A DNA stretch of 64,000 nt from Oikopleura dioica (Eukaryota > Animalia > Chordata), in assembly GCA_907165135.1 (NCBI GenBank), contig OU015567.1:6138001-6202000 (forward strand), read 5' to 3'. The notes beneath the pieces are model-generated. The model was not told the DNA's origin. It worked only from the letters and a program-made list of their open reading frames with translations, and did no database searches. Below are positions 23,025 to 51,743 of this stretch, piece after piece (positions within the stretch are counted from its first letter, which is position 1; each line of letters opens with the position of its first letter). A program made the position numbers and the translations under genes.

Positions 23025-24528
23025 ATGGGCAAGTTATACACCTACCCCGATAACTTCCGTGCCGATAAGATCAAGGCCGTCGCCGCTATCTCCGGATACA
23101 AGCTCGAGGTACAACTTGTAGTAGCATTTGTATAGTCACAAGCCTATCATTACGCTGGGTAAACTTTATATGTTATCTTTCGGGTTAGTTGGAGCGTAAT
23201 TCCGATAGCTTCGCCAGACCCTCTACGTAGTGGCTTATCTTATTAATATTAATAATTATGATCGTGTAGTATTTCTTCTATCGCACTATCTCATCTTTAT
23301 CTTTCAGGTCGCCTCTGACTACGTCCACGGCGTCACCAACAAGACACCCGAGTTCGAGTCAAAATTCTTCGGAAAAGTTCCCGCCTTCGAGGATGGCTCC
23401 ACCGCCCTCTGCAACGACACCGCCATCGCCCACTTCGTCGGCAACGATCAAACACGAGGTGGTGCCAAGGCCCACGACGTTCTCTGCTGGTCTGGCTTTG
23501 CCGACAGCACCCTTCTCCCCGCCATCGCCCAGTGGGTTTGGCCTACTTTGGGTGTCATCGCTCCCAACAAGCAGCACGTCTCCGAGGCCAAGGAGAGCCT
23601 TAAGAAGGCCTTCACCTTCATGAACGGCTACCTTGCCACCTGCACTTTCCTCGTTGGTGAGCGAATCACTTACGCTGACATCGCCGTCGCCTTGACCCTC
23701 AAGTCCGGCTACGAACAGGTCTTCACCCCAGAGTGGCGAAAGGCCTACCCCCATGTTAACCGATGGTTCTTGACCACTGTCAACCAGCCAGCTGTCGCCG
23801 GCGTCATCGGTGAAGTCAAACTCGCAGTCAAGGAGGCCCAGTTCGACGCCAAGAAATTCGCCGAAGTCTCTGGCAAGGCCAACAAGAACGCTGCCAAGAA
23901 AGAAGCCAAGAAAGAAGCGAAGAAGGAGGCAAAGAAGGCCGAGCCCAAGGCCGCCGCTGCCCCCGCTCCCGCCAAGGAGGACAAGCCCGCCGACCCATGG
24001 GAGGGCCTTGCCAAGCCATGTGTCGACATGGACTCCTGGAAGCGATTCTACTCCAACAACGATGAAGACAAATCCGTCGAGCACTTCTGGAACAACGTCA
24101 TCACCGACGAAGTCAAGAAGGAGTACTCCCTCTGGGTTGGAACTTACAAATACGCCGACGAGCTCACCCAGCCCTTCATGGCCTCCAACCTCATCGGTGG
24201 CATGTTCCAGCGAATTGAGAAGCTCCGAAAGCACGTAAGTAGATTCAAAATGATGCTTTTGCTGATTACTCTTTATTAGGCTTTTGCTTCCTGCGTTGTC
24301 GGTGGCGTGCCCAACGACCTCAACATCACCGGTCTCTGGTTCTGGCGAGGACAGACCCTTGCCTTCCCCCGATCTCCTGACTGGCAGATCGACTACGAGG
24401 TCTACGACTGGCAGAAGCTCGAATGGGACGCCCCCGAAGTCAAGGATATGGTCGCCAAGTACTGGATGTGGGACGAGAAGGCCCAGTTCGCCGGCAAGCC
24501 CTTCAACCAGGCCAAGATCTACAAGTAA
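23025..24528 (+). CDS. EEF1G: Elongation factor 1-gamma
   Basis: GST-like N terminus (KLYTYPDNFRA, GKVPAFE), KKEA linker, WKRFYSN, FMASNLIGGMFQR, WQIDYEVYDW; strong C-ending codon bias. Confidence 0.97.
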
Positions 24529-24810
24529 ATCCCTCTTTCTTTCCCCAAGTTCAGGGAGTTCTGCTTCCTCTTATTACTTAGGCGCAATTTCCAATTCATC
24601 CCTCCTTTCTGTCGTAACAAGAACTGCTTCATTTTTCCGATAATATAAGTTAAATGAATTATTGAAAGAAAGTGATAAAAAAAATTTGTTTATTTTTGTA
24701 TTATTTTTATTTTTTATCGATTGGGCAGATTTACAGAGGACTTGAATGTAAATTTCCAATTGGAAATGCAGTCGCAGGGAAAGTTAAAATTAAAGCAGAT
24801 AAAAAGAAAC

Positions 24811-25083
24811 TTAATACATTCGGTTTCGGTAGTGAGACTTCATTCGATTTCGGAGGGAGGATCGGGCAGCTCCGAAGCGGCTTCTCGGATTCGGTTGGGT
24901 GTAGACAAGTCGTGCTTGGTCGTTGCCGAAGTAACCCATGTTAGGGTTCGTTCGTCTTCCCATCTGATAGTCAATGCCGGTCTGGATATGATTGTTAGCA
25001 TTGTTCATGTAGCGCTGGTGGCTGATTCCATCGCAAGCGACGAAAGAAACGGAAACAGCGAGAAAGAGAGTGTTGAAGAGCAT
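24811..25083 (-). CDS. Small secreted basic peptide, copy P1 (90 aa, intronless)
   Basis: Signal-like MLFNTLFLAVSVSFVAC, Arg-rich tail; 81/90 identical to 27543-27815; TATA box upstream. Confidence 0.85.
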   Translation of the reverse strand: MLFNTLFLAVSVSFVACDGISHQRYMNNANNHIQTGIDYQMGRRTNPNMGYFGNDQARLVYTQPNPRSRFGAARSSLRNRMKSHYRNRMY

Positions 25084-25152
25084 GTTTAGGTTTTATTTGT
25101 TTGTTTGATCGGTGTAGATGATTTGATGATTGTTGCAGGTCTCTCGTCTTCC

Positions 25153-25215
25153 TTATATATTCTCAAAATCGGGAACGGTGGCGTCCGAGCTTGTCAAAAA
25201 TACGAAGAGCGCCGC
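25153..25215 (-). promoter_or_regulatory. TATA promoter of P1 with upstream motifs shared with P2
   Basis: Minus strand reads GCGGCGCTCTTC ... CTCGGACGCCACCGT ... GAGAATATATAA; same blocks at 27411-27468. Confidence 0.75.
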
Positions 25216-25532
25216 GTAGCTCACGTCTGCTAGTGTCGCTATTATCATAATTAATGTAAACTTTTTTTACATGTCGTAGCTCTTACTAAACACTGGGCAA
25301 AGCATCACTTATCAAATATAAAACGACATGCAGGCAACTTGATAGGGAGCCCCATATACGGGTACCATACGAAAGCATGTAAAAAGCTGTAGTACATCGG
25401 CTATCCAAAATGTGCCTGGATTTTCATCTTATGAACCTAACTATAGTCGATCAAACGTCTTCCTTTTAGAATGCTTTGATGAGATCCTCAAGTTGAAATA
25501 TCACACTCCTAAATTTCGATTGGAAAGTAATA

Positions 25533-26299
25533 ATGAATGGATTATCCAAGGACATCGACAATCGCTATCGGTCCGGTCCAGCACCGCCCAAGCTGCTTTC
25601 AATGGACTGTCACACATGCAGAAAATACCAAGAAATCGAGCTCTTTCTTTGCTGCTGGCTCGACGGGACGCAGCCGACGGCATACTGCTCGCTAGAATGC
25701 CAGCAGACGGACTGGAATCGGCACAGGGCGCTGTGCTCGCGAAATACGCGTCCTCTCGATCGACTGAGAAGAGAATGCGACAAAAAAGTAGAAGAAAATC
25801 AGCACACACTGCAGTTGCTAGAAACGGCGAATAAAGACCTAAATCGGAAGCAAATGGACATTTTAAAGCTAAATGACTGTAAATACAAATTTCTCGATAC
25901 ACGACGTTAATTTCTCTTTCTTTCTAGGTATATATAGAAAAGACGAGAGAATAAAAGATCTCGAACGAATAAACGAAAAAACAAACGCTGACAAAACCAC
26001 CGCGCTAGAATTTGCAAAAGAGCAGGAAATCAAAAAAGATGCCTGGATAAAATTAGTCAATAGACATGAAAAAACGTAACTTATTTTTCTACAAAAACAT
26101 GTCTGAGAATCATCTTCCTTTTAGCATTTCCGAGAACACCAAACTTGAAACAAAAATCGCTGAAGATTCCAAAAAAATTAACGACATGCGAAGTGGTGTA
26201 AAGAATCTTATGGACAGGTTCATGGAGGAGAAATCAAAGCACAAGAAAGAGATAGAAGAGTTACAGTCTCGGCTCGATCTTCTAACTTCTGACAGCTGA
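25533..26299 (+). CDS. MYND zinc-finger plus coiled-coil protein (3 exons; start uncertain)
   Basis: CHTC...CC...YCSLECQQTDWNRHRALC matches zf-MYND; followed by K/E-rich heptads across two short GT-AG introns. Confidence 0.75.
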
Positions 26300-26577
26300 T
26301 CTCTACTAAGTCAATCTTCACCGATTTAACTGTACTGTACAGACACTCAGTAACTATCTATTCACTGCGAGAAACACGCCTTCTTCAGGCTCGAATATCG
26401 GAGATACAGTTCATAAGCGAACTTTACTACACATATTTTGATTATTTGACTTCTTTCTTTTTGCAATTTCAAAGAACCTATTTTAACAGGACTCCAACTT
26501 TCTTTCCACCTCAAGGCTCCAAAAACATTAACAGCAATAATCACTAGAGCGCTCTTTCTTGTAAATGATCATTTTAG

Positions 26578-28474
26578 ATGATAAAAAGTATCCGAGTAGT
26601 TAGACCTTCCATCAGAAATCGGACAGATAAACGTTCGCCCTTCAGTCCTCGTCAGAACTGGTTCAGGTGACGATTATTCAAAATTTACTGACGTGACAAA
26701 AAATTTTAGTTCTCCGAAATTAGCGAATTCTCGAAAGGGTTATCTTTCCTCAATTTACAAGAAATCGGAGCAATCCAGTCAGAATAAAGTGATCTTTGAA
26801 ACCGAAAGAGCGCCAGTAGAATCTACAGTCACCGTGAGACGCAACCATGTCGATCAGTTTACCGACCGAAATTTCATACTAATCGATTTCGAAGCCATCA
26901 ACAGCGAAATCTGCGAATTCCCGGCAATTTGGGCACGCAACGGCGAAATCAAAGCCGTCTTCCACGCATACTGCCGGCCAACAAAGGCGATCCGACCAGA
27001 TCGATACAATGGCTTTTACAAAGACTTTCTTGGACACAACTTGAAGTTTTATCTGAAACAGAACTCGTTTAAAAACGTCGAGTGGCAGTTTTGCAAGTGG
27101 TGCAAGCATCACAAACTTATGGTGGAGACGCAGAAGGGGATTTTTAATATTGCTAGTGATACTGCCATTGTGACCCAAGGAACTGAAGATTTCAACTTCC
27201 TCAATACTTCACTTCTCAATAATAAAGGTTAGAGTTATGAGACTTATGTTGTTACAGTTGGTCACCTTTTATACAACAGGCTGTCGAAAACTTTTTTTTG
27301 TTTCATTATTAGAGAACACAGAAATGCATCTTTTTTCTATGAGAAAAAATAAGTACTGATGATTACGTTTAAAATTGCATACAACGACATGAATGGCAGG
27401 CATGAGTTCGGCGGCGCTCTTCAGTTTTCCACTCGGACGCCACCGTCCACAAAATCGAGAATATATAAACGAAAAGATCGCCACGAAAGAATCATCTACT
27501 CATCTTCAACAGCCAACCAACCAAGCAATAAAAAATCAAAACATGCTCTTCAACACTCTCATTCTCGCTTTTTCTGTTTCCTTCGTCGCCTGCGATGGAA
27601 TCAGCCACCAGCGCTACATCAACAATGCTAACAATCATATCCAGACAAGCATTGACTATCAGATGGGAAGACGAACGAACCCGGACATGGGTTACTTCGG
27701 CTACGACCAAGCCCGACTTGTCTACACCCGACCCAACCCAAGAAACCGCTTCGGAGCTGCCCGATCCTCCCTCCGAAATCGAATGAAGTCTCACTACCGA
27801 AACCGAATGATCTAAGAGTTTTTCCAACACTTTCAAAGTCCTTTTTACCAATTCATTACAATGAAAGTCTCTTCTGTATAACCTTCCTCTCTGTATATCT
27901 GCCAATTCTTAATAAAAAATTCAAAAATTGAAACAAATAAGATATACAATCTTACAATTTTCGTCGGTTGACTTCGTAAGCTCACCCCTAATCATCAATA
28001 GTCAAAATGATCTCATCCTCTTAGGACTCTTAAACTATACTCTCTGACAGTCTGTTCAAACTAGAATTTAAGCAGTTTATCCTGTTTTGAGTAGTGATTT
28101 TATCAAGCGCCAAGCTGCCTAAAATCTAAAACAATGATTTTTTGTTTGCAAATTCTTATAATATATGACAAATATTATCACTATCATTTCACTATCACTT
28201 TCAAACAACGACCATTCTAAGTAATCATTTAGTTTCAGCGAAGGAACGCCCTTGCTACAAATATTTCTACGACCTTGACGCTTTATGGATTCACGCAATC
28301 GGCAGCGATCCTCCTCGCTCACCACGAATGCACAACATGGCCAAGGATCAAAACTGGCCCGATGTTCCCAACGCCCATTCTGGCATTCATGACACACTTC
28401 AGGTCTTGGTTCAGACTTTTATTCATTTTTTATTGTTATGCAAACTTTCTCAGACAAAATTGACAATTCTGTGA
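26578..28474 (+). CDS. ERI1-family DEDDh 3'-5' exonuclease (exons 26578-~26666, ~26709-27227, 28239-28474)
   Basis: ExoI ILIDFEA..EICEFP, FHAYCRP, ExoII VTQGTEDF; a phase-1 intron 27228-28238 joins to RPCYKYFYDL and ExoIII AHSGIHD. Confidence 0.8.
27411..27468 (+). promoter_or_regulatory. TATA promoter of P2, inside the exonuclease intron
   Basis: GCGGCGCTCTTC (27411), CTCGGACGCCACCGT (27432), GAGAATATATAA (27457), matching the P1 promoter. Confidence 0.75.
27543..27815 (+). CDS. Small secreted basic peptide, copy P2 (90 aa), nested in exonuclease intron
   Basis: ATG 27543 after an A/C-rich leader; 90% identical to P1; AATAAA near 27911. Confidence 0.85.
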   Translation: MLFNTLILAFSVSFVACDGISHQRYINNANNHIQTSIDYQMGRRTNPDMGYFGYDQARLVYTRPNPRNRFGAARSSLRNRMKSHYRNRMI

Positions 28475-28482
28475 CAGAGTTT

Positions 28483-28710
28483 CTAGTTTTGTTGATGATG
28501 TTTGATGAAGAGCATTTTTGAGTATCGTCGTCGGTCACGTCTTTCGTTTGGGTAGCTGACGATACGGGCCATTCCGAGATAGTTGTTCTTGATTCCCGAA
28601 TCGGGGTAGCTGCCCATTTGCTTCATTAGATGAGTGTAGGCACTATTGCGACCCCGGTTGAAGTTGATGGAGTCAGCTGAGACAAGAGCGAGAAATGGAA
28701 AGAGATTCAT
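28483..28710 (-). CDS. Small secreted basic peptide P3 (75 aa), diverged paralog of P1/P2
   Basis: Signal-like MNLFPFLALVSA; shares D.I...R, QMG, Y.G, AR(I/L)V..PN.R; TATATAAA at 28782-28792 and A/C-rich leader. Confidence 0.7.
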   Translation of the reverse strand: MNLFPFLALVSADSINFNRGRNSAYTHLMKQMGSYPDSGIKNNYLGMARIVSYPNERRDRRRYSKMLFIKHHQQN

Positions 28711-29122
28711 GTTTTTGATGTTTTTTTGAGTGGTTGTTTTTTGTTGTAATTGTTGATGTCCCGAAGGTTTAACCGCTGTGCTTTTATATAAAATTTTTGA
28801 GGCGCTCTTTTGGGAATAAGGGGGGTAGAGGGTCGTTTCTCCAGGCACCAGAGATCGACGATCAGAATCTAGTACTGCTCACTAATAATACTGGATCGGA
28901 TTTAGAAAGATGATTATATCATAAATATCATTTATAAATCTCATAAATAAACCGAACCATCATAGCTATATTACGTTTTCGACGGATTAAGAAGGAAGCT
29001 AACAAGCGACTCGACGGAAAATGTTTTACGGAGAGCGCTGAGAAAAAATCAAAATCATCAATCAGCGCCAACGAAAAAATGAATTGATCCTTATCCAAAA
29101 AATAACGTTTTGTTTTGCTAGA

Positions 29123-31329
29123 ATGAGCGGGGGAATGTACTGCAATGATGATATGGGTGCGCTGGTGATGGATATTGGCTCGCATTCGGTCAAAGCTGGT
29201 TTTGCTGGTGAAGAGCATCCGAAAATTTATTTCAATAATGTTAACGGAAGACACGTGGACAAGGAGACAGGACAAGTTACGAGGATCTTCAGAGATGAGT
29301 TTCTCAACATCCCCAAGTCTAATGTCGAGGTGCGCGACCCCCCTATCTTCCTCTTTCATCCCATTTTAAGATAGAAACATGCATGAACAAAGGATACATC
29401 GAAAACTGGAATCTATTCGAAGAACTGATGGACCACATCCTCACAAAACGGCTCGACGTCGAGCCTGAATTCCACCCCATTCTTTTCACAGAACAGGTAA
29501 AGTGCCTCTTCTCTCATTCCCTCATTATTTGAAAAAGGCACGTGCGCCGCCTGCAATTCGCGAAAAACTGTTAGAAATAATGATGGAGAAGTTCAAAATT
29601 CCCGCTTTTTTACACTGCCAAGAATCCAGTACTGGCTTGCTACGCAAATGGCCGAGCAAGTGGAATCGTTCTTGATGCTGGTGCAACTCATACAACCGCT
29701 TCAGCAGGTATTAGCTTTGATGTCAAATAAAAGCCTTGTATAAGTTAGTATAACCTTAAATTTAAGCTGATGTAGCTTGTTCGATGATTTACTTGAGTGC
29801 GTTAATCACACTCCAGCTTCTCTTCTTTAGAAGGAAATAGAAAGGAATAGAGCGTTCAAATTCGAAGTTGCTTCCCTGATGAATCACTTGATTGATGTTA
29901 TTTTTTTTAAAGTTATGGAAGGATACGTTATCAAAAACGCGATCATCCAAAGTCCCATCGGAGGTGACTACATCACTCGCAATGCTCTTCAACTCCTGAA
30001 AGCGTCTGACGAGAAACTTCATCTTCCCTACGAAATATCGCATAAAGAAGAGCTCAAACCTGGTCAGACAGGTGAGCCTTTCTCTTTCATCAACAATGGG
30101 CAAAGTTCGCTTTCTAGCGCCGGTTTTTCACCTGAAGAAAAATTTGCCAGAAGTGACGAACTCGTGGCGCGCGTATCAGGAAACAAGATTGGCGCAAGAC
30201 TGGGTTCATCAGATTATTCAAGTCTCTGAAAACGAGTAAGAGGGTCCCTATTGAAGCTTTGACTCTACCTTTTTTCAAGCTACCGGCCAGAAGAAGCCGC
30301 GATGCGTCCTTCCATAGAATACGAGTTTCCAAATGGCGCGAGTGTTGGCTACGGAGTAGATCGCTTTCGACTGGCTGAACCGCTCTTCAACACGAGAATG
30401 GTTGATAACAAGAACTCCCTCCTTGGCGTCGGGCATTTGATAACGTAAGAATAAGACTTTTTTCGATGAATTTTAAAGAACCATAAAAAGCAGAAAAGTT
30501 AGATCATATGGTATTTCAAAATTGACGCTAGAGTAAGGCTCAGGAAGACCAACCGTGCACCACTCCATGAACTTAAAATGTGGACAACCCTAACCATCCA
30601 CAGATTCTGAAGCCACGCCTCTATTTTTACCACTAAAATGGGTACCGTTATTACGGCACAGAAACGTGTGGTGCGCCTCACGAATTTACTCTATGAAGAC
30701 CACCTGACGCAAGTTTCGTGTGTGACCCACTGAACGGATTTTCAATGACGAGCTCAACTTTCTTCGATAATTTTAAAGTGCGATATGACTGATTGTAATC
30801 TCCGTATGATTTATGGTTCAAATTTTGACCTTCAAAGTATCGGTATCATCTTGGCACTATCATATGATTTACAAATTATCATATAAATTGTCGCCCTTCG
30901 GACTGAATACGTATTCATAGAACGTCACTTCACTACTGCGAAAACGAAATACGCCCGCAACTCGTCTCCAGCGTCATTCTTACTGGAGGAAATTGCAATC
31001 TTGCAGGGTATGATTTTTGATTTTCTTCTTCGATTCTTTTCAAACTGAAATTGGTAGTTTTGTTGATCGAATCAACATGGAGCTGCAGAAAACGCCGCCG
31101 CACATGAAATTCAAAATCGCAAACGGACAGCCAGGTGCCGTACATCAAACCGATCGTCGATTTGGGTAAAAAACGCGTCCCTCGGGCAGCTTTATGTTTT
31201 CGTTTTCTGTTTAGTAACTGGATCGGCGGCTCGATCATTGCCTCACTGCCATCATTTGCGCCCATGTGGGTTTCGGCGAAAGATTACGCTGAAAGTGGCG
31301 TCAAAATCTTTGAGAGAAAGTGCATCTAA
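29123..31329 (+). CDS. ACTL6A: Actin-related protein BAF53/Arp4
   Basis: [52 protein letters not shown]; one apparent +1 T frameshift at 29606-29611. Confidence 0.9.
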
Positions 31330-40569: not shown

Positions 40570-43500
40570 GAGGATGTTTTTGAAGAAAACTTCATCGTGG
40601 AAGAAAGTCTCGCTGAGAATAATCATGTAAGGCAAAGTTCAAAAGGGCTGACATAAATTATACAAGCTACTTGAGGACGACAGACACATCATGCGACAGA
40701 ATACGAATGACACGGTACAACAAGTGCCTGTAAAACAAGAGGAGAAAATTGTGGCTACATCAAGCCCGCGTGTGTCCATTAGCTCATCTTCTGTATCTCT
40801 ATGTAAGTAGCGTTGGTTTTGGTTCGATAGTTATTCTGAAAATTAAGGCTCAGAAAAAAGTGGAACATCTGAAAAACAAGAGCATCAATCATCAGTTCGA
40901 TCAGAAAATGAAGAAGCATTTGAAGTCGTGGAGAAATCGGAAATCGTGGATGAAGCTCTTCTTGACGAGTCTTTGAAGTCGGATTCCCAAGAAAAAGCTG
41001 CTGAAAATCCTGAAGTAAATATCTTCTTTGAGGACCAACAAACACGCGGAAAGAGTGAAAGTCCTCGCACAGTAATCAGCGAGGATGATATCGAGGAAGA
41101 GCGGAAGAAGATGGAAGAGGATTTAAAGTCACGGGACGATGATTGTATGCTTTGAGATTAGATAGTATGAAAACATAATTATTTCCTGCGTTGTCTTAAA
41201 ATTAGGATTAGTCGCAAAGTCATATGCATAAAGACATTCATTTTTTCAATTCATTAATCCCAAAATAAGAAGGCTGAAACCGTCTCTGAGCCGATGCCAC
41301 CTTTTACAATTAGCGACTTTGAAAAACACGTTCGAGGAAAGGCTCTAACTCTCAAAGAATAAATTCCCATGTGTACAAAATCAAGAGCTTTGATGAAACA
41401 GGCATTCAAGAAACCGACGGAGCAATGACCGAACCGATTACTCCAGGAAGTTCGTTAACAAACGTCACTGATGCCAGCACGGAGAAGAATATTTCAACGT
41501 CGCAGGCGTCCCTGGATTCGGAGAGTACTTTAAAATCCGAGGACTTACAGGTAAGGCCGTAAGGGACTCTGCTGGAACATTCTGATCAAGATAATCATTT
41601 TATAATAGCAGATGTAAAACAAGAATCTAGCTTAGATATGCGGATTAATTTAATGAAAAACACTTATTTTCACCGGCTGCGGACTTCAGTTCGGAATGAA
41701 TAAATTACCATAATTATTCATTTTCTTTAATTAAAGATTGTTACTACAAGATAATTGAATCCAAATTCTCCTCCAGCCGGCTGATTGCAACATAAGCCCG
41801 TAATAACTGCTTAGGTTCGTCGGCAAGAAACGCTTGAAGCCTTCAATGAAGCTGAAAAATCCATCCACGAAGCGAATGAAATCGCTTTGCAAGTCTTGCA
41901 AACTGGTAGGGCGTTTTCTACCGCTTGCTTTTTCATCTCGTCGTTTTAGATACAGAAGATTCACTGGACTTTCAGGAGATTGATTCTGACTTAGCAACGA
42001 CTCTGAGTCTTACATCGACAACAACAAATCAAGTTACTATTACTAAAGGTAATATACAATACTCAGTTAACTTCTTCTCATGCCTTCATCAATATCAATT
42101 TTGTCGTAGGAGAAAATCAACAATGTGTAGCCGATGGTGTCATCAAAGAGTCAGATGGAGAAGCACCTGCAGAAGGTAAAATTAAAAGCTATATTTAAGA
42201 CTTATGTTTAGGGGGTGCACAGTGGGAAAATCGGCAAATTTAAAAGTATATGTATCTTTATTATAACCCCGCGAATAGATCCGTTTTCATCTAAGGATCA
42301 TTTGATTTCATTAAAAGAAACCGAAAAAAGCACATTTTCAACCCTTAAATCACGTGACAAGGGTTGATTCAACAGTTTTTTGTCTGTAGAAAAAAAGTGC
42401 CAAAAGGTTACCTCGTAATTTTCGAGTATATAAAAGAGCAGATCAAGCGCTTTCAAGTGATAGTCATATGATCTTGTGGTCTCGTGAGGAAAAAATTCTA
42501 GAGCCGATTTTCTGTCAAAATCCTTGACTTTTTGGCCAAGAGGGTGTTCGAATCCCGACAATAACATTTTTTTTTTCAAACCGTTTTTTCCCAATAAAAT
42601 GATCAACACTGATCATGTGATCTAGGGTGAGTCATTTTTTGTCCTCAAAAGGACTATTCTGGTGGAGAAGTGCTCCTGGAAGACAAAAATTTTCGACAAA
42701 TTTTTTCAGCCCCCTTCCTTGATTTTTAATTTTAAGGGGCTTGACGGCCCTTCGGGCCGTTTCAGCCCCCTTCCTTGATTTTTAATTTTAAGGGGCTTGA
42801 CGGCCCTTCGGGCCGTTTCAGCCCCCTTCCTTGATTTTTAATTTTAAGGGCTTGACGGCCCTTCGGGCCGTTTCAGCCCCCTTCCTTGATTTTTAATTTT
42901 AAGGGGCTTGACGGCCCTTCGGGCCGTTTCAGCCCCCTTCCTTGATTTTTAATTTTAAGGGCTTGACGGCCCTTCGGGCCGTTTCAGCCCCCTTCCTTGA
43001 TTTTTAATTTTAAGGGGCTTGACGGCCCTTCGGGCCGTTTCAGCCCCCTTCCTTGATTTTTAATTTTAAGGGCTTGACGGCCCTTCGGGCCGTTTCAGCC
43101 CCCTTCCTTGATTTTTAATTTTAAGGGGCTTGACGGCCCTTCGGGCCGTTTCAGCCCCCTTCCTTGATTTTTAATTTTAAGGGGCTTGACGGCCCTTCGG
43201 GCCGTTTCAGCCCCCTTCCTTGATTTTTAATTTTAAGGGGCTTGACGGCCCTTCGGGCCGTTTCAGCCCCCTTCCTTGATTTTTAATTTTAAGGGGCTTG
43301 ACGGCCCTTCGGGCCGTTTCAGCCCCCTTCCTTGATTTTTAATTTTAAGGGGCTTGACGGCCCTTCGGGCCGTTTCAGCCCCCTTCCTTGATTTTTAATT
43401 TTAAGGGGCTTGACGGCCCTTCGGGCCGTTTCAGCCCCCTTCCTTGATTTTTAATTTTAAGGGCTTGACGGCCCTTCGGGCCGTTTCAGCCCCCTTCCTT

Positions 43501-44850
43501 GATTTTTAATTTTAAGCCCCCTTCCTTGGGGCTTGACGGCCCTTCGGGCCGTTTCAGCCCCCTTCCTTGATTTTTAATTTTAAGGGGCTTGACGGCCCTT
43601 CGGGCCGTTTCAGCCCCCTTCCTTGATTTTTAATTTTAAGGGCTTGACGGCCCTTCGGGCCGTTTCAGCCCCCTTCCTTGATTTTTAATTTTAAGGGGCT
43701 TGACGGCCCTTCGGGCCGTTTCAGCCCCCTTCCTTGATTTTTAATTTTAAGGGGCTTGACGGCCCTTCGGGCCGTTTCAGCCCCCTTCCTTGATTTTTAA
43801 TTTTAAGGGCTTGACGGCCCTTCGGGCCGTTTCAGCCCCCTTCCTTGATTTTTAATTTTAAGGGGCTTGACGGCCCTTCGGGCCGTTTCAGCCCCCTTCC
43901 TTGATTTTTAATTTTAAGGGGCTTGACGGCCCTTCGGGCCGTTTCAGCCCCCTTCCTTGATTTTTAATTTTAAGGGGCTTGACGGCCCTTCGGGCCGTTT
44001 CAGCCCCCTTCCTTGATTTTTAATTTTAAGGGGCTTGACGGCCCTTCGGGCCGTTTCAGCCCCCTTCCTTGATTTTTAATTTTAAGGGGCTTGACGGCCC
44101 TTCGGGCCGTTTCAGCCCCCTTCCTTGATTTTTAATTTTAAGGGGCTTGACAGAGGCCTGGAACTCTTAGTTGATCAGTCTCAGTTACGTCCCCAACCCC
44201 ACCCACACCCGTTGATATTTAAATTTAAATTATCCTTGTTTTTTTCTTAATTATGGTTTTTATAAGACGTCGATTAATATCTTTAACAACTTGTTTCTCT
44301 GGAGTTAAACAGTTGTAAAAGAGTTTTGACAGTGAAATTAACGATTTTTAATTTTTCATTTTTTCCTTCTGATGGATGAGGATGGATCCGGATGTGGTTT
44401 TTACGACGATAAAAATGTTCAGTGATCATCAGCGATTAATTTTATGCAAAAAAGCCTATTCTTAATCGGCTTTAAGAAAAATCGCATTTTGATCTCAGGG
44501 GACCTCAGGTGACCTTCAATGACCCCAAGTCACATGTCAAAATGATCAGTGGATCATAGGCTTTCCATTGATGAATCATTCATCCCTATAAGAGGATGAT
44601 AAAAAAATCGATTTTCCCACTGTGCACCCCCTACTTATGTTGTAAAATTTACAATGTAAATGTTATTGTCTATTTCTTCGTAAATCAAACATCTTTCAGC
44701 CTCGATTGATATCAATGACGCAGGTGTTGATACACTTGTGAAAGGTACCTTTTTTGAATAATAAAAATCAAGGTATTCATACTTTCATATTTTTCAGCAA
44801 AAAAATCATCCTCGCCAGTTCCTGAAAATGAGCCTTCTGAAACTCAGTGA
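40570..44850 (+). CDS. Acidic low-complexity multi-exon protein (start not resolved)
   Basis: Series of short E/D/S/T-rich open exons bounded by GT/AG sites (e.g. ORF 40928-41155), last exon ending ..EPSETQ* at 44850; no family motif. Confidence 0.5.
42209..44633. mobile_element. Non-autonomous hAT-like DNA transposon (2425 bp) in an intron
   Basis: TIR TAGGGGGTGCACAGTGGGAAAATCG / CGATTTTCCCACTGTGCACCCCCTA; 8-bp TSD CTTATGTT at 42201-42208 and 44634-44641. Confidence 0.9.
42704..44151. repeat. Minisatellite, ~26 copies of a 55-56 bp palindromic unit
   Basis: Unit GATTTTTAATTTTAAGGGGCTTGACGGCCCTTCGGGCCGTTTCAGCCCCCTTCCTT; variants differ in G-run length; one unit with an internal duplication near 43516. 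Confidence 0.98.
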
Positions 44851-45617: not shown

Positions 45618-45914
45618 AACCGCGGTTGAACCGCGCGGTTGACCATCCGGTTCGGCCCGGTTAACTCTAGAATATCCCCAAAACCACTGAATATGCATAT
45701 CAATCGACTGGAAATTGAGCAGAGAACAAAATAAAATATAAACCGCGGTTGAACCGCGCGGTTGACCATCCGGTTCGGCCCGGTTAACTCTAGAATATTC
45801 CCAAAACCACTAAATATGCATATCGATCGACTTGAAATTGAACAGAGAACAAAATAAAATATGAACCGCGGTCCAACCGCGCGGTCGATCTTCCGGTTAG
45901 CTCTAGAAAATCTT
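45618..45914. repeat. 123-bp tandem subrepeats (x2.5) inside left TIR, mirrored in right TIR
   Basis: AACCGCGG core at 45618, 45741 and 45864. Confidence 0.9.
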
Positions 45915-49421: not shown

Positions 49422-51743
49422 TTTCGAGAAAAAGACGAAGAAAAACGAAGAAAAACGAAAAATTGAAGCAGTAAAGAAGGAGAGACTGAAGCGCGCATCG
49501 AATCAGCGCCGACTGATAAGAATGTGCGCAAGCCTAGTATTACTCAGAATGACAGAAAAGGTAAAATCAACGAAGAAAGAAGTAAAAAGTCTTCTAAAGA
49601 TAAATTTTGAAAATTCTGAGAGGATTTCAAGATTTTCTAGAGCTAACCGGAAGATCGACCGCGCGGTTGGACCGCGGTTCATATTTTATTTTGTTCTCTG
49701 TTCAATTTCAAGTCGATCGATATGCATATTTAGTGGTTTTGGGAATATTCTAGAGTTAACCGGGCCGAACCGGATGGTCAACCGCGCGGTTCAACCGCGG
49801 TTTATATTTTATTTTGTTCTCTGCTCAATTTCCAGTCGATTGATATGCATATTCAGTGGTTTTGGGGATATTCTAGAGTTAACCGGGCCGAACCGGATGG
49901 TCAACCGCGCGGTTCAACCGCGGTTCAACTTTTTATACATTATTATTAATGACTACATCAATATTTATAACTAATTGACAAGTTTCTAGTGAAAATTTCA
50001 TACTTCCGGAATTTCATCCAACTTTCTAGCGCCTCTAGCGGCCACTAGAAAGTCTGGCAACAGTATTTTATTGGCGTTTTAGAAAGCTCAGACGCTGGGC
50101 TTTCTAACGCACCTACTTACAAGCCATTTGAAGCCAGTACCGGCAACCAAAAATTCGATTGAAGAGTTCTAGTGCCAATTTCGGAACTTCCGGTGCCATG
50201 AATTGCCTTGCGGGCATGACCCAGACCACTCGATATGGGGCTCAAATGAAAGCTCAGCTTCTGGGCTTTCAGAATCTGTGTCATATGACCCCTCAACTAA
50301 GCTAGAAAAAGTGGCCAAATTTTCATCTAATAAGCCTAAAGATAACACAAACAGCAGTCTGTAACAGTTAACAGTGTATTCAAGCAAGTTAGTACCTCCC
50401 CCAACTTGTATCCAGCCATGCGTCCTTGGCGACAACTGCAGCGAATCGTCGGGCCACCTTCGGAAATTATCTTGGTTCTGAACAAGAATATCATTGTCTA
50501 TTTTTGAGTTGAGCGAATGGATCTTATTTTTATCTCAAGTACTAGTGTAGATTCACAATAAAATATTCTGCCAGAATCTTCAAATCGTGCACTAATTTTA
50601 GTGTCTTTGTTTTGTCCCGAATTTATTTTAGAATATTTCTTTGCCAGATCCATGGTTATTCCATTGAGAAGTCCCCTATTTGATTATGACGGATAATTCG
50701 ATAATAGGAGCTACTCACCCGACTTTGATCGATGGAGCAGTGTATCTTGTTCACAAGCTTTAAATCGCATGATTTCAATTCGAAAAAGAATCTGAATTTC
50801 TCTGAATAGTTCTGTAAGCTTTTCCTTTCACAAGCCTCATCTGGTAACATCTGACTGTAGCATCCAGTTATCATGTCTCTTCCAGCGCAAATTATCAGCA
50901 AAAATAACTCTTTCATATTTTTTTAAAACGAGAAAAAAAGATGGGTTCGATACAATTAGAGGCGAATTTGAAAATGCTACACGAATTAAAGATTTAGGCG
51001 CGATTCAACATTTATTACACTCACGACGTTACTTTGCATCTAATTTCGCGCATGCAAATGCAACAGCTCATCGAAACAGGGGAGCTTATCAATAATTCAG
51101 CGTGTATATCGTGCAAGCTTCTAACAAGATCTCCAAAGATGATTAAAGCAATCTTCGGCATTATGAGGGCTCTGTCGAAGGTTTATTGAAGATCGAATGA
51201 AAATAATATATTGTGACTTTATTTCTGATCGAACAACGATCAGTTCCAGCCATGTCCGATAAGATCATCAAATATATTTTTGTTATTGATCTGATTTTTA
51301 TAGTATTTACAATACTTGGAAGGCAGTTATTTTGAAGAATGATGATGACGATTTCAAAGATAAAATAATTGTCGAAATTATACGATAAATCTGATATAGT
51401 AGGTTCTTTTAGAACCGAGATAATTATCAATCGTATTCCTGACTTATCTCGTACTAAAAGAACTCCTATTTCAGAACTATCGTATAATTTTGACAATTCA
51501 CAATTATTCAAGCTTTGAAAAATTGAAATCGTCATCATCCTTCTTCGAAATAAATGCTTCCTCATAACTACAGTCTGTTATTAAAAATTCCCTATGATCA
51601 TCGCTAATACCCTCGTTTAGCAGCTCTTGATCAAGGAAATGACTAAAAACTTGCTAAGCCTGACCTTTTATCTTGCCAACTTTCAAGTATAATTGTCCAA
51701 TATCCAACTCATAAAGGAACTCTACCTTTTTTTAAGTTCAAGC

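Follow-up and report, generated by a model that had tools for sequence, protein, structure and literature searches.

A same-strand peptide gene nested in the intron that divides the predicted active site of an ERI-type exonuclease gene in Oikopleura dioica

The window analysed here is a stretch of 64,000 nucleotides (nt) from Oikopleura dioica (GenBank assembly GCA_907165135.1, contig OU015567.1, forward-strand positions 6,138,001 to 6,202,000), and all coordinates below are counted from its first nucleotide. It carries a four-exon gene, referred to as the host, which encodes a predicted DEDDh 3'-5' exonuclease. The second intron of the host separates the ExoII motif from the ExoIII motif, and within it lies P2, a small peptide gene on the same strand. 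A close paralogue of P2, termed P1, is located in a nearby intergenic region, and a more distant member of the same family, P3, is found antisense within the third host intron. Most probably, the host is spliced across these guests, and the locus combines two independent gene types wherein each guest is transcribed from its own TATA promoter.

The window locus is collinear with an independent TARA metagenome contig, L005, over positions 24430-29844 at 92% identity. A second contig from the TARA Oceans marine metagenome, L003, covers positions 26308-27362 at 95% identity. Because L005 is collinear and L003 overlaps, the nested arrangement is, on the evidence of these contigs, genuine and not an assembly artefact.

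The open reading frame (ORF) table of the window contains the host in pieces. There is an open frame at 26693-27232, which is the exon-2 ORF and terminates with NNKG and a stop codon, and there is a frame at 28241-28474 that includes AHSGIHD. A search with the exon-2 ORF retrieves P0002 and P0003, which are proteins of 284 amino acids (aa), 81% identical, coded on contigs of about 0.9 kb. When P0002 is compared with the window by tblastn, four collinear exons are recovered. The resulting host gene (26578-29082, plus strand) has a spliced coding sequence (CDS) that is open over 297 codons. The features of the host and of P2, including its untranslated regions (UTRs), are as follows.

26578-26666 (+): host exon 1, 89 nt, placed by tblastn of P0002, with its ATG right after the acceptor TTTTAG (26570-26577)
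26667-26709 (+): host intron 1, 43 nt, GT..AG; the frame is kept only with these borders, which match the L002 cDNA (NWF-S-SPK)
26710-27227 (+): host exon 2, 518 nt, placed by tblastn of P0002, with ExoI D89/E91 at 26885-26893 and ExoII D190 at 27188-27190
27228-28232 (+): host intron 2, 1005 nt, AAAG/GTTAGAG ... CATTTAG/TTTCAG, placed by orthologous mRNA and genomic junctions
27432-27542 (+): predicted P2 core promoter and 5' UTR, with the block CTCGGACGCCACCGT at 27432-27446 and TATATAAA (TATA box) at 27462-27469
27543-27815 (+): P2 CDS, 90 aa, with the ORF intact in the window and in L005
27816-27935 (+): P2 3' UTR, with AATAAA at 27911-27916
28233-28402 (+): host exon 3, 170 nt, with ExoIII H251..D256 at 28376-28393, 97% identical to L005
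28403-28965 (+): host intron 3, 563 nt, CAG/GTCTTGG ... CATCATAG/CTATAT
28966-29082 (+): host exon 4, 117 nt, closed by the TGA stop codon (29080-29082), whose last base is also the end of the NCBI gene model

There are three environmental mRNAs of the 81%-identical host homologue (L002, L006 and L007), and they join the same exons. The P2 unit (27432-27935) lies wholly inside 27228-28232, and it is these orthologous mRNAs that show the join of the flanking exons. Similarly, the borders of intron 3 are based on the cDNA homologue, which reads on as HDTLQ-LYYVFDG, where the LYYVFDG sequence is located at 28966 of the window. In L002 and L006 alike, the 40-nt O. dioica spliced leader (SL) is complete and fused directly to the ATG of the host orthologue. 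L007 starts inside the leader, has the 3' 23 nt of the SL at the same ATG join, and has a poly(A) tail beginning about 15 nt past the stop codon. The leader sequence used for this comparison is given in 10.1101/353979 and is credited there to Ganot et al. 2004. The TTTTAG/ATG at 26577/26578 is likely the SL trans-splice site of the host, and the host gene is probably SL-trans-spliced. The first eight nucleotides of L002 and of L006 are ACATGGGG, placed ahead of the spliced leader, which we take to be the remnant of a template-switching oligo left in the assembly.

This structure agrees in part with a first-pass annotation of the same DNA, which had ended the exonuclease ORF after ExoII (NNKG and a stop at 27232) and placed a splice donor GT at 27228-27229. 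Both proposals are borne out, the donor being backed by the orthologous junctions. The first-pass model also lacked exon 1, with its gene start at 26578 and the 43-nt first intron, and it ran the last exon to 28474. The latter proposal fails because there is a donor at 28403 followed by exon 4 at 28966-29082, such that the proposed C-terminus (VLVQTF...TIL and a stop) represents read-through into intron 3.

The exact acceptor of intron 2 deserves separate consideration. The mRNAs L002, L006 and L007 all read NNK-VSMDRR-PCYKYF at this point, and the genomic orthologue L001 has the junction ...AATAATAAAG/GT...TTATTAAG/TTTCTATGGAC (that is, ...AAAG/GT...TTAAG/TTTCTATGGAC). The window sequence reads ...CATTTAG/TTTCAG/CGAAGG, wherein use of the first AG (28231-28232) yields NNK-VSAKER-PCYKYF, with the same product length and the same V-S as in the orthologues. 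The second AG (28237-28238) lies six nucleotides downstream, within conserved exon codons, and is also in phase. Both AGs are identical in L005. Judged from these orthologous sequences, the AG at 28232 is probably the main acceptor.

The first-pass annotation had chosen the second of these sites, TTTCAG ending at 28238. Its join is in phase and does give NNK-A-KERPCYKYFYDLDALW...AHSGIHD as described, but the orthologous acceptor is located 6 nt upstream, and the intron is most likely 1005 nt long instead of the proposed 1011 nt. We consider it possible, although doubtful, that AG 28237-28238 is nevertheless the site chiefly used, which would join 27227 to 28239 to produce NNK-A-KER and a protein shorter by two residues. 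TTTCAG is a good acceptor that is kept in L005, and the upstream AG is only about 12-13 nt past the best branch-point-like sequence, CTAAG, which could favour the second AG. However, the acceptor falls at the 28232 position both in the orthologous mRNAs and in the genomic intron of L001, the V-S dipeptide is conserved across lineages, and the second AG is present in the window and L005 but does not exist in L001 or L002. Because it is in phase and conserved in L005, AG 28237-28238 could serve as a minor or alternative site. A further acceptor much closer to the donor, at 27257, had been proposed to generate a catalytically incomplete form. This candidate was rejected, as L003 lacks the segment through a deletion, and in L005 the site is preceded by a 7-nt insertion and followed by a stop after four codons, so that the frame is not kept. 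Any product from the 27257 acceptor would be a truncated protein without ExoIII, and is more likely to be noise than a regulated form.

By fold and by motifs, the host is a divergent DEDDh 3'-5' exonuclease of the ERI type, with a predicted activity, which agrees with the identity and the motif reading given in the first-pass annotation. The Pfam family RNase_T (PF00929) matches P0002 with E = 9.4e-5 over residues 87-258, corresponding to profile positions 14-164 of 164, and a phmmer search of P0002 against the PDB gave no match. The AlphaFold model of P0002 has a mean per-residue confidence (pLDDT) of 68, with a core at about 80-95 and a disordered stretch comprising the first 67 residues. 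The best PDB match to this model found by Foldseek is ERI3 (7k05; E = 3.6e-10, TM score 0.72, 196 columns, 22% identity), and the next fold matches are ERI2, 3'hExo and CRN-4. Likewise, the profile of the host family matches ERI3 with E = 4e-4, and this alignment pairs ILIDFEA with LVLDFEA, VTQGdeD with VTCGDWD, and AHSGlhD with PHSGIDD.

All five DEDDh residues are aligned, namely the D-x-E of ExoI, the D of ExoII and the H-x4-D of ExoIII. Residues D89, E91 and D190 are encoded by exon 2, whereas H251 and D256 (HSGIHD, 28376-28393) are encoded by exon 3, and so the two parts lie on either side of intron 2. As the first-pass annotation had anticipated, it is the downstream exon that supplies ExoIII, aligned here to the HSGIDD of ERI3. 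The host shares with the ERI1 family (ERI3/PRNT1, ERI2, 3'hExo/ERI1 and CRN-4) the fold, with the above TM score to ERI3, and the DFEA, G-x-x-D and HSG-x-x-D contexts. It differs from this family in that identity is only about 21%, its homologue falls slightly under the Pfam RNase_T threshold, about 70 N-terminal residues are disordered with no SAP domain, and its recognizable relatives are found only among appendicularian-like marine sequences. An exhaustive HMMER search recovered only exon-sized fragments, from such appendicularian-like sequences, one of which (P0017) starts with a translated SL. The same search also returned P0014, a repeat protein of 583 aa, which was judged to be a spurious low-complexity match and was excluded.

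The nested gene P2 has a second copy outside the host, which is located as follows.

24811-25193 (-): P1, the intergenic paralogue of P2 and the other copy of the duplication, with its CDS at 24811-25083 plus promoter

P1 and P2 form an inverted repeat with 292 nt at 91% identity and a further 93 nt of upstream sequence at 71%. The P2 CDS is 91% identical to P1. The P2 product has a hydrophobic N-terminus of 16 residues, followed by 74 hydrophilic and very basic residues (isoelectric point 10.9). The hydrophobic N-terminus is 16 residues long in both P1 and P2 and about 12 in P3, and a G-R-R site is invariant across the four P1/P2 sequences of the window and L005 and absent from P3. There is no Pfam match to P2 and no confident fold. 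These features suggest that the P2 product may be a secreted basic peptide or the precursor of one. A word-indexed search with P2 returned only the P1/P2 cluster, and a scan of the JGI metagenomes with the P1/P2 alignment yielded no relative. P1 is the sole family member in the NCBI annotation and protein collection, from which P2 and P3 are absent. An Rfam scan of the whole window produced no match, and thus the intron is not accounted for by any known RNA gene.

A four-way alignment of the P1 and P2 copies from the window and L005 reveals the block CTCGGACGCCACCGT-(N)-GAGAATATATAA in all four, about 80-110 nt 5' of the ATG. This block occurs nowhere else in the window, and it is common to P1 and P2 though their flanks have diverged. 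The four copies also have in common the motif CTCTGTA.ATCTGCC just 5' of the poly(A) signal. P1 lies antisense between the EF-1 gamma gene and a MYND gene, and because of this orientation relative to its neighbours it must have its own promoter. P2 inherited a P1-type promoter via the duplication.

Conservation between the window and L005 follows the outline of the P2 unit. Identity is 98.2% in the promoter and 5' UTR, 95.6% in the CDS and 95.8% in the 3' UTR, whereas the remaining 3' part of intron 2 is at 71% with many indels, and the part of intron 3 outside P3 is at 72%. The P2 promoter carries 2 mismatches in 111 nt, and the 3' part of the intron carries 27 in 285 nt (Fisher P = 0.009). 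Ahead of the duplicated unit, the 5' part of intron 2 (27228-27431) is at 91% where the 3' part is at 71%; P2 regulatory sequence could extend this far, or there may simply be fewer indels here.

The coding sequence of P2 shows a similar signature. Between the window and L005, the ratio of non-synonymous to synonymous rates (dN/dS) is 0.20 for P2, with 7 synonymous and 5 non-synonymous changes (P = 0.008). The corresponding ratio is 0.23 for the P1 orthologue pair, and 0.26 when P1 is compared against P2. When the P1 and P2 orthologue pairs are combined, the excess of synonymous change has P = 2e-4. As predicted in the first-pass annotation, intron 2 holds a complete same-strand unit. P2 appears to be a peptide gene that has a conserved promoter and poly(A) signal of its own, is under purifying selection and is presumably expressed.

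A further guest is found in the next intron of the host.

28483-28710 (-): P3 CDS, 75 aa, distantly paralogous to P1 and P2, antisense within host intron 3

On the minus strand, TATATAAAAG is located about 75 nt upstream of this CDS (near 28785), and AATAAA motifs occur near 28425-28440, before the donor of host exon 3. The 5' UTR of P3 ends with ...ATCAAAAAC-ATG and resembles that of P2. The BLASTP match between P2 and P3 (E = 0.002, 35% over 60 residues) is weak but specific. The dN/dS of P3 between the window and L005 is 0.10, and the distant lineage L001 has a P3-like frame in the same intron and on the same strand that stays open to the contig end (tblastn 4e-5). P3 is a third and older member of the family, and is presumably expressed. 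There are two contigs, L008 and L009, from a still more distant appendicularian, and in these exons 3 and 4 are fused and there is no P3. Ahead of the ExoIII exon, L008 (positions 1-283) has an intron of 283 nt or more that is full of GGGTCAAATTTC-like repeats, as does L009.

The comparison of intron size with an orthologue that lacks P2, which had been suggested as a check, gives a clear result. The L001 intron homologous to host intron 2 is bounded by GT..AG at the same position, measures 43 nt and contains no P2. Synonymous divergence (dS) between P1 and P2 is about 0.2, compared to about 0.09-0.15 for orthologues of the window and L005, and between the window and the L002 lineage it is saturated. 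These values place the P1/P2 duplication after the split from the L001 and L002 lineages and just before the split between the window and L005. On this sequence evidence, the duplication is recent, local and inverted. The most economical account is that a DNA copy of about 0.5 kb, extending from promoter to poly(A) signal, was inserted together with flanking material in a short intron. In the Okinawa-type lineage, a local inverted duplication would have put a whole small transcription unit of the P1/P2 type, comprising a TATA promoter, a 90-codon ORF for a very basic peptide bearing a putative signal peptide, and a poly(A) signal, into an intron of about 43 nt, which would have expanded to 1005 nt as a result.

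The region immediately downstream of the host also bears on how the nest may operate.

29083-29125 (+): spacer of 40 nt with an AG acceptor, and the ATG (29123) of an actin-related protein (Arp) gene

An Actin-family gene is called at 29123-31329 of the window, and the adjacency of host and Arp gene recurs in the distant contig L008. The host and the Arp gene probably form an operon, given the SL on the host mRNA, the short spacer with its AG, and the L008 adjacency. If so, both the P2 poly(A) signal and the antisense P3 unit also stand in the path of any polymerase bound for the Arp gene.

Despite the guests in its introns, the host has been maintained. Its dN/dS between the window and L005 is 0.11 (16 synonymous and 7 non-synonymous changes; P = 8e-7), exons 3 and 4, which lie downstream of P2, are 97-98% identical to L005, and dN relative to L002 is 0.13, at saturated dS. 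Because purifying selection includes the exons downstream of P2, the host is not silenced outright, and in evolutionary terms these substitution patterns indicate that the nuclease is neither silenced nor truncated. We envisage that RNA polymerase II on the host runs through P2 and P3, that the same transcript probably extends into the Arp gene 40 nt downstream as an operon, and that splicing removes the 1005-nt intron, mainly at AG 28232, as well as the 563-nt intron. P2 would yield a separate transcript started at its own promoter, probably confined to a particular cell type or stage. Host and guests would each be kept by selection, such that interference, whether by premature polyadenylation at the P2 site or by promoter occlusion, is at most partial or specific to some cell types.

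Several observations weigh against this interpretation. The Pfam score of P0002 is 23.4 bits, just below the gathering cut-off of 24, and the exon pieces of the window used alone have no match in Pfam or PDB sequence searches; the nuclease is therefore identified solely via its full-length homologue, the profile of that homologue and its predicted fold. The dN/dS of exons 3 and 4 is 0.2, on small counts of 4 synonymous and 3 non-synonymous changes (P = 0.04). Transcripts of the host, P2 or P3 from this lineage were not found, and neither acceptor gave a match when the spliced junction of the window lineage was sought in the JGI metagenome scan, so orthology and conservation are the basis for the junction, for preferring one AG over the other, and for the expression of P2. 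Likewise, it is not settled whether P1 or P2 is the parent copy, because L001 ends just before the position of P1. Finally, the public model for OU015567.1 has a single gene of 470 aa (window 25533-29082) that merges the host with the upstream MYND gene.

Other explanations of the nest can be weighed against the same data. The first-pass annotation had raised the prospect that P2 activity truncates or silences the nuclease. In a strong form of this proposal, transcribing P2, or using the P2 poly(A) site, would to a material extent truncate or shut down both the exonuclease and the operon gene that follows it, and expression of host and guest would be mutually exclusive in the manner of H13/Mcts2. 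P2 is indeed on the same strand and its canonical AATAAA at 27911-27916 is kept in L005, such an interference mechanism is documented at a mammalian nested locus (PMC13309782), and a guest of the same family persists in the neighbouring intron across a deep divergence. However, purifying selection acts on the host, including the exons downstream of P2, in both P2-bearing lineages, and the lineage without P2 keeps the same host protein, which indicates that P2 is not needed for host function. We therefore regard a regulatory nest of this kind as unlikely. Another reading is that the peptide family is functionally coupled to the exonuclease/Arp unit, with the guests in two consecutive introns, one sense and one antisense, forming a cell-type switch. 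This we think improbable. If it were true, firing of the peptide promoters would abort host elongation and lower both the nuclease and the downstream operon gene, and transcriptional interference would be used as regulation in a compact, operon-bearing chordate genome.

Two remaining possibilities concern the status of P2 itself. It might be an unexpressed and decaying duplicate of P1 that merely enlarges the intron, which would be consistent with its absence from the NCBI annotation and protein collection and with the failure to find a P2 transcript. Yet the ORF is intact in two lineages, there is the excess of synonymous change noted above for P2, and the promoter and UTRs are 96-98% conserved beside intron sequence at 71% with many indels, so we consider a dead copy very improbable. 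Alternatively, P2 might lack its own promoter and behave as an intronic cistron, released from the precursor RNA of the host or of the operon through SL trans-splicing and polyadenylation. SL trans-splicing resolves operons in O. dioica, and AGs exist in the P2 5' region, such as CAACAG at about 27507-27512. This AG is missing from P1, which is antisense and must have its own promoter, and the TATA box and upstream block are exactly common to P1 and P2. A trans-splicing origin of the P2 mRNA was accordingly rejected, and we give it hardly any credence. A host spliced across guests that each have their own promoter thus remains the reading that we prefer.

With this structure in place, the public annotation can be reconsidered. 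The span of the 470-aa model covers a MYND-domain gene, whose stop codon is at 26297-26299, and the separately trans-spliced exonuclease gene, and it is probably a merged model. The public model would thus fuse two genes and miss two small nested genes, and the corrected structure recovers a full DEDDh active site. Intron-nested genes and operons have been described as annotation hazards in O. dioica (CORAL preprint 10.64898/2025.12.04.692336). The present locus shares with known features of this species its short introns, intron-nested genes, SL trans-splicing at AG/ATG and tiny intercistronic spacers, and differs from known nests in being unannotated.

Genes nested within other genes are frequent in animals, pairs on the same strand are nearly as common as those on opposite strands in mammals (PMC11694760), and the choice between host read-through and intronic polyadenylation is a recognized issue, as for H13/Mcts2 in mouse (PMC13309782). 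Like these animal host/nested pairs, the O. dioica locus has, as judged here by sequence, one gene lying complete with promoter and poly(A) signal within the intron of another. The differences are of scale and origin. The guest measures only about 0.5 kb, its intron 1 kb and the host 2.5 kb, in a compact genome of the 70-Mb class, and the guest arrived via DNA duplication that included its promoter and not via retroposition. Moreover, members of one guest family occupy two consecutive introns, one on each strand, and the host is probably part of an SL-resolved operon.

Nested genes are well known, and this new and unannotated example is useful without being surprising. It is modestly unusual in having guests of one family in two consecutive introns, an active site that is spread across interrupted exons, and lineages both with and without the insertion. 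The last feature constitutes a dated natural experiment, in which two lineages have a same-strand guest bearing a poly(A) signal in the intron and one has the original 43-nt intron. Because such lineages exist, the effect of a same-strand nest on the output of the host, and possibly of the operon, is measurable between them.

Elsewhere in the window there are tandem arrays. The one at 42704-44151 consists of 25.8 copies of a 56-nt unit, with 97% matches, and includes short GC-rich palindromes; this region has no ORF of at least 120 aa, and its AT skew is strongly negative in the 2-kb bin. Two further arrays of 123-nt units in 2.3 copies each are located at 45618-45898 and 49645-49927. These are mutual reverse complements with about 3.7 kb between them, an arrangement that resembles the terminal inverted repeats of a mobile element.

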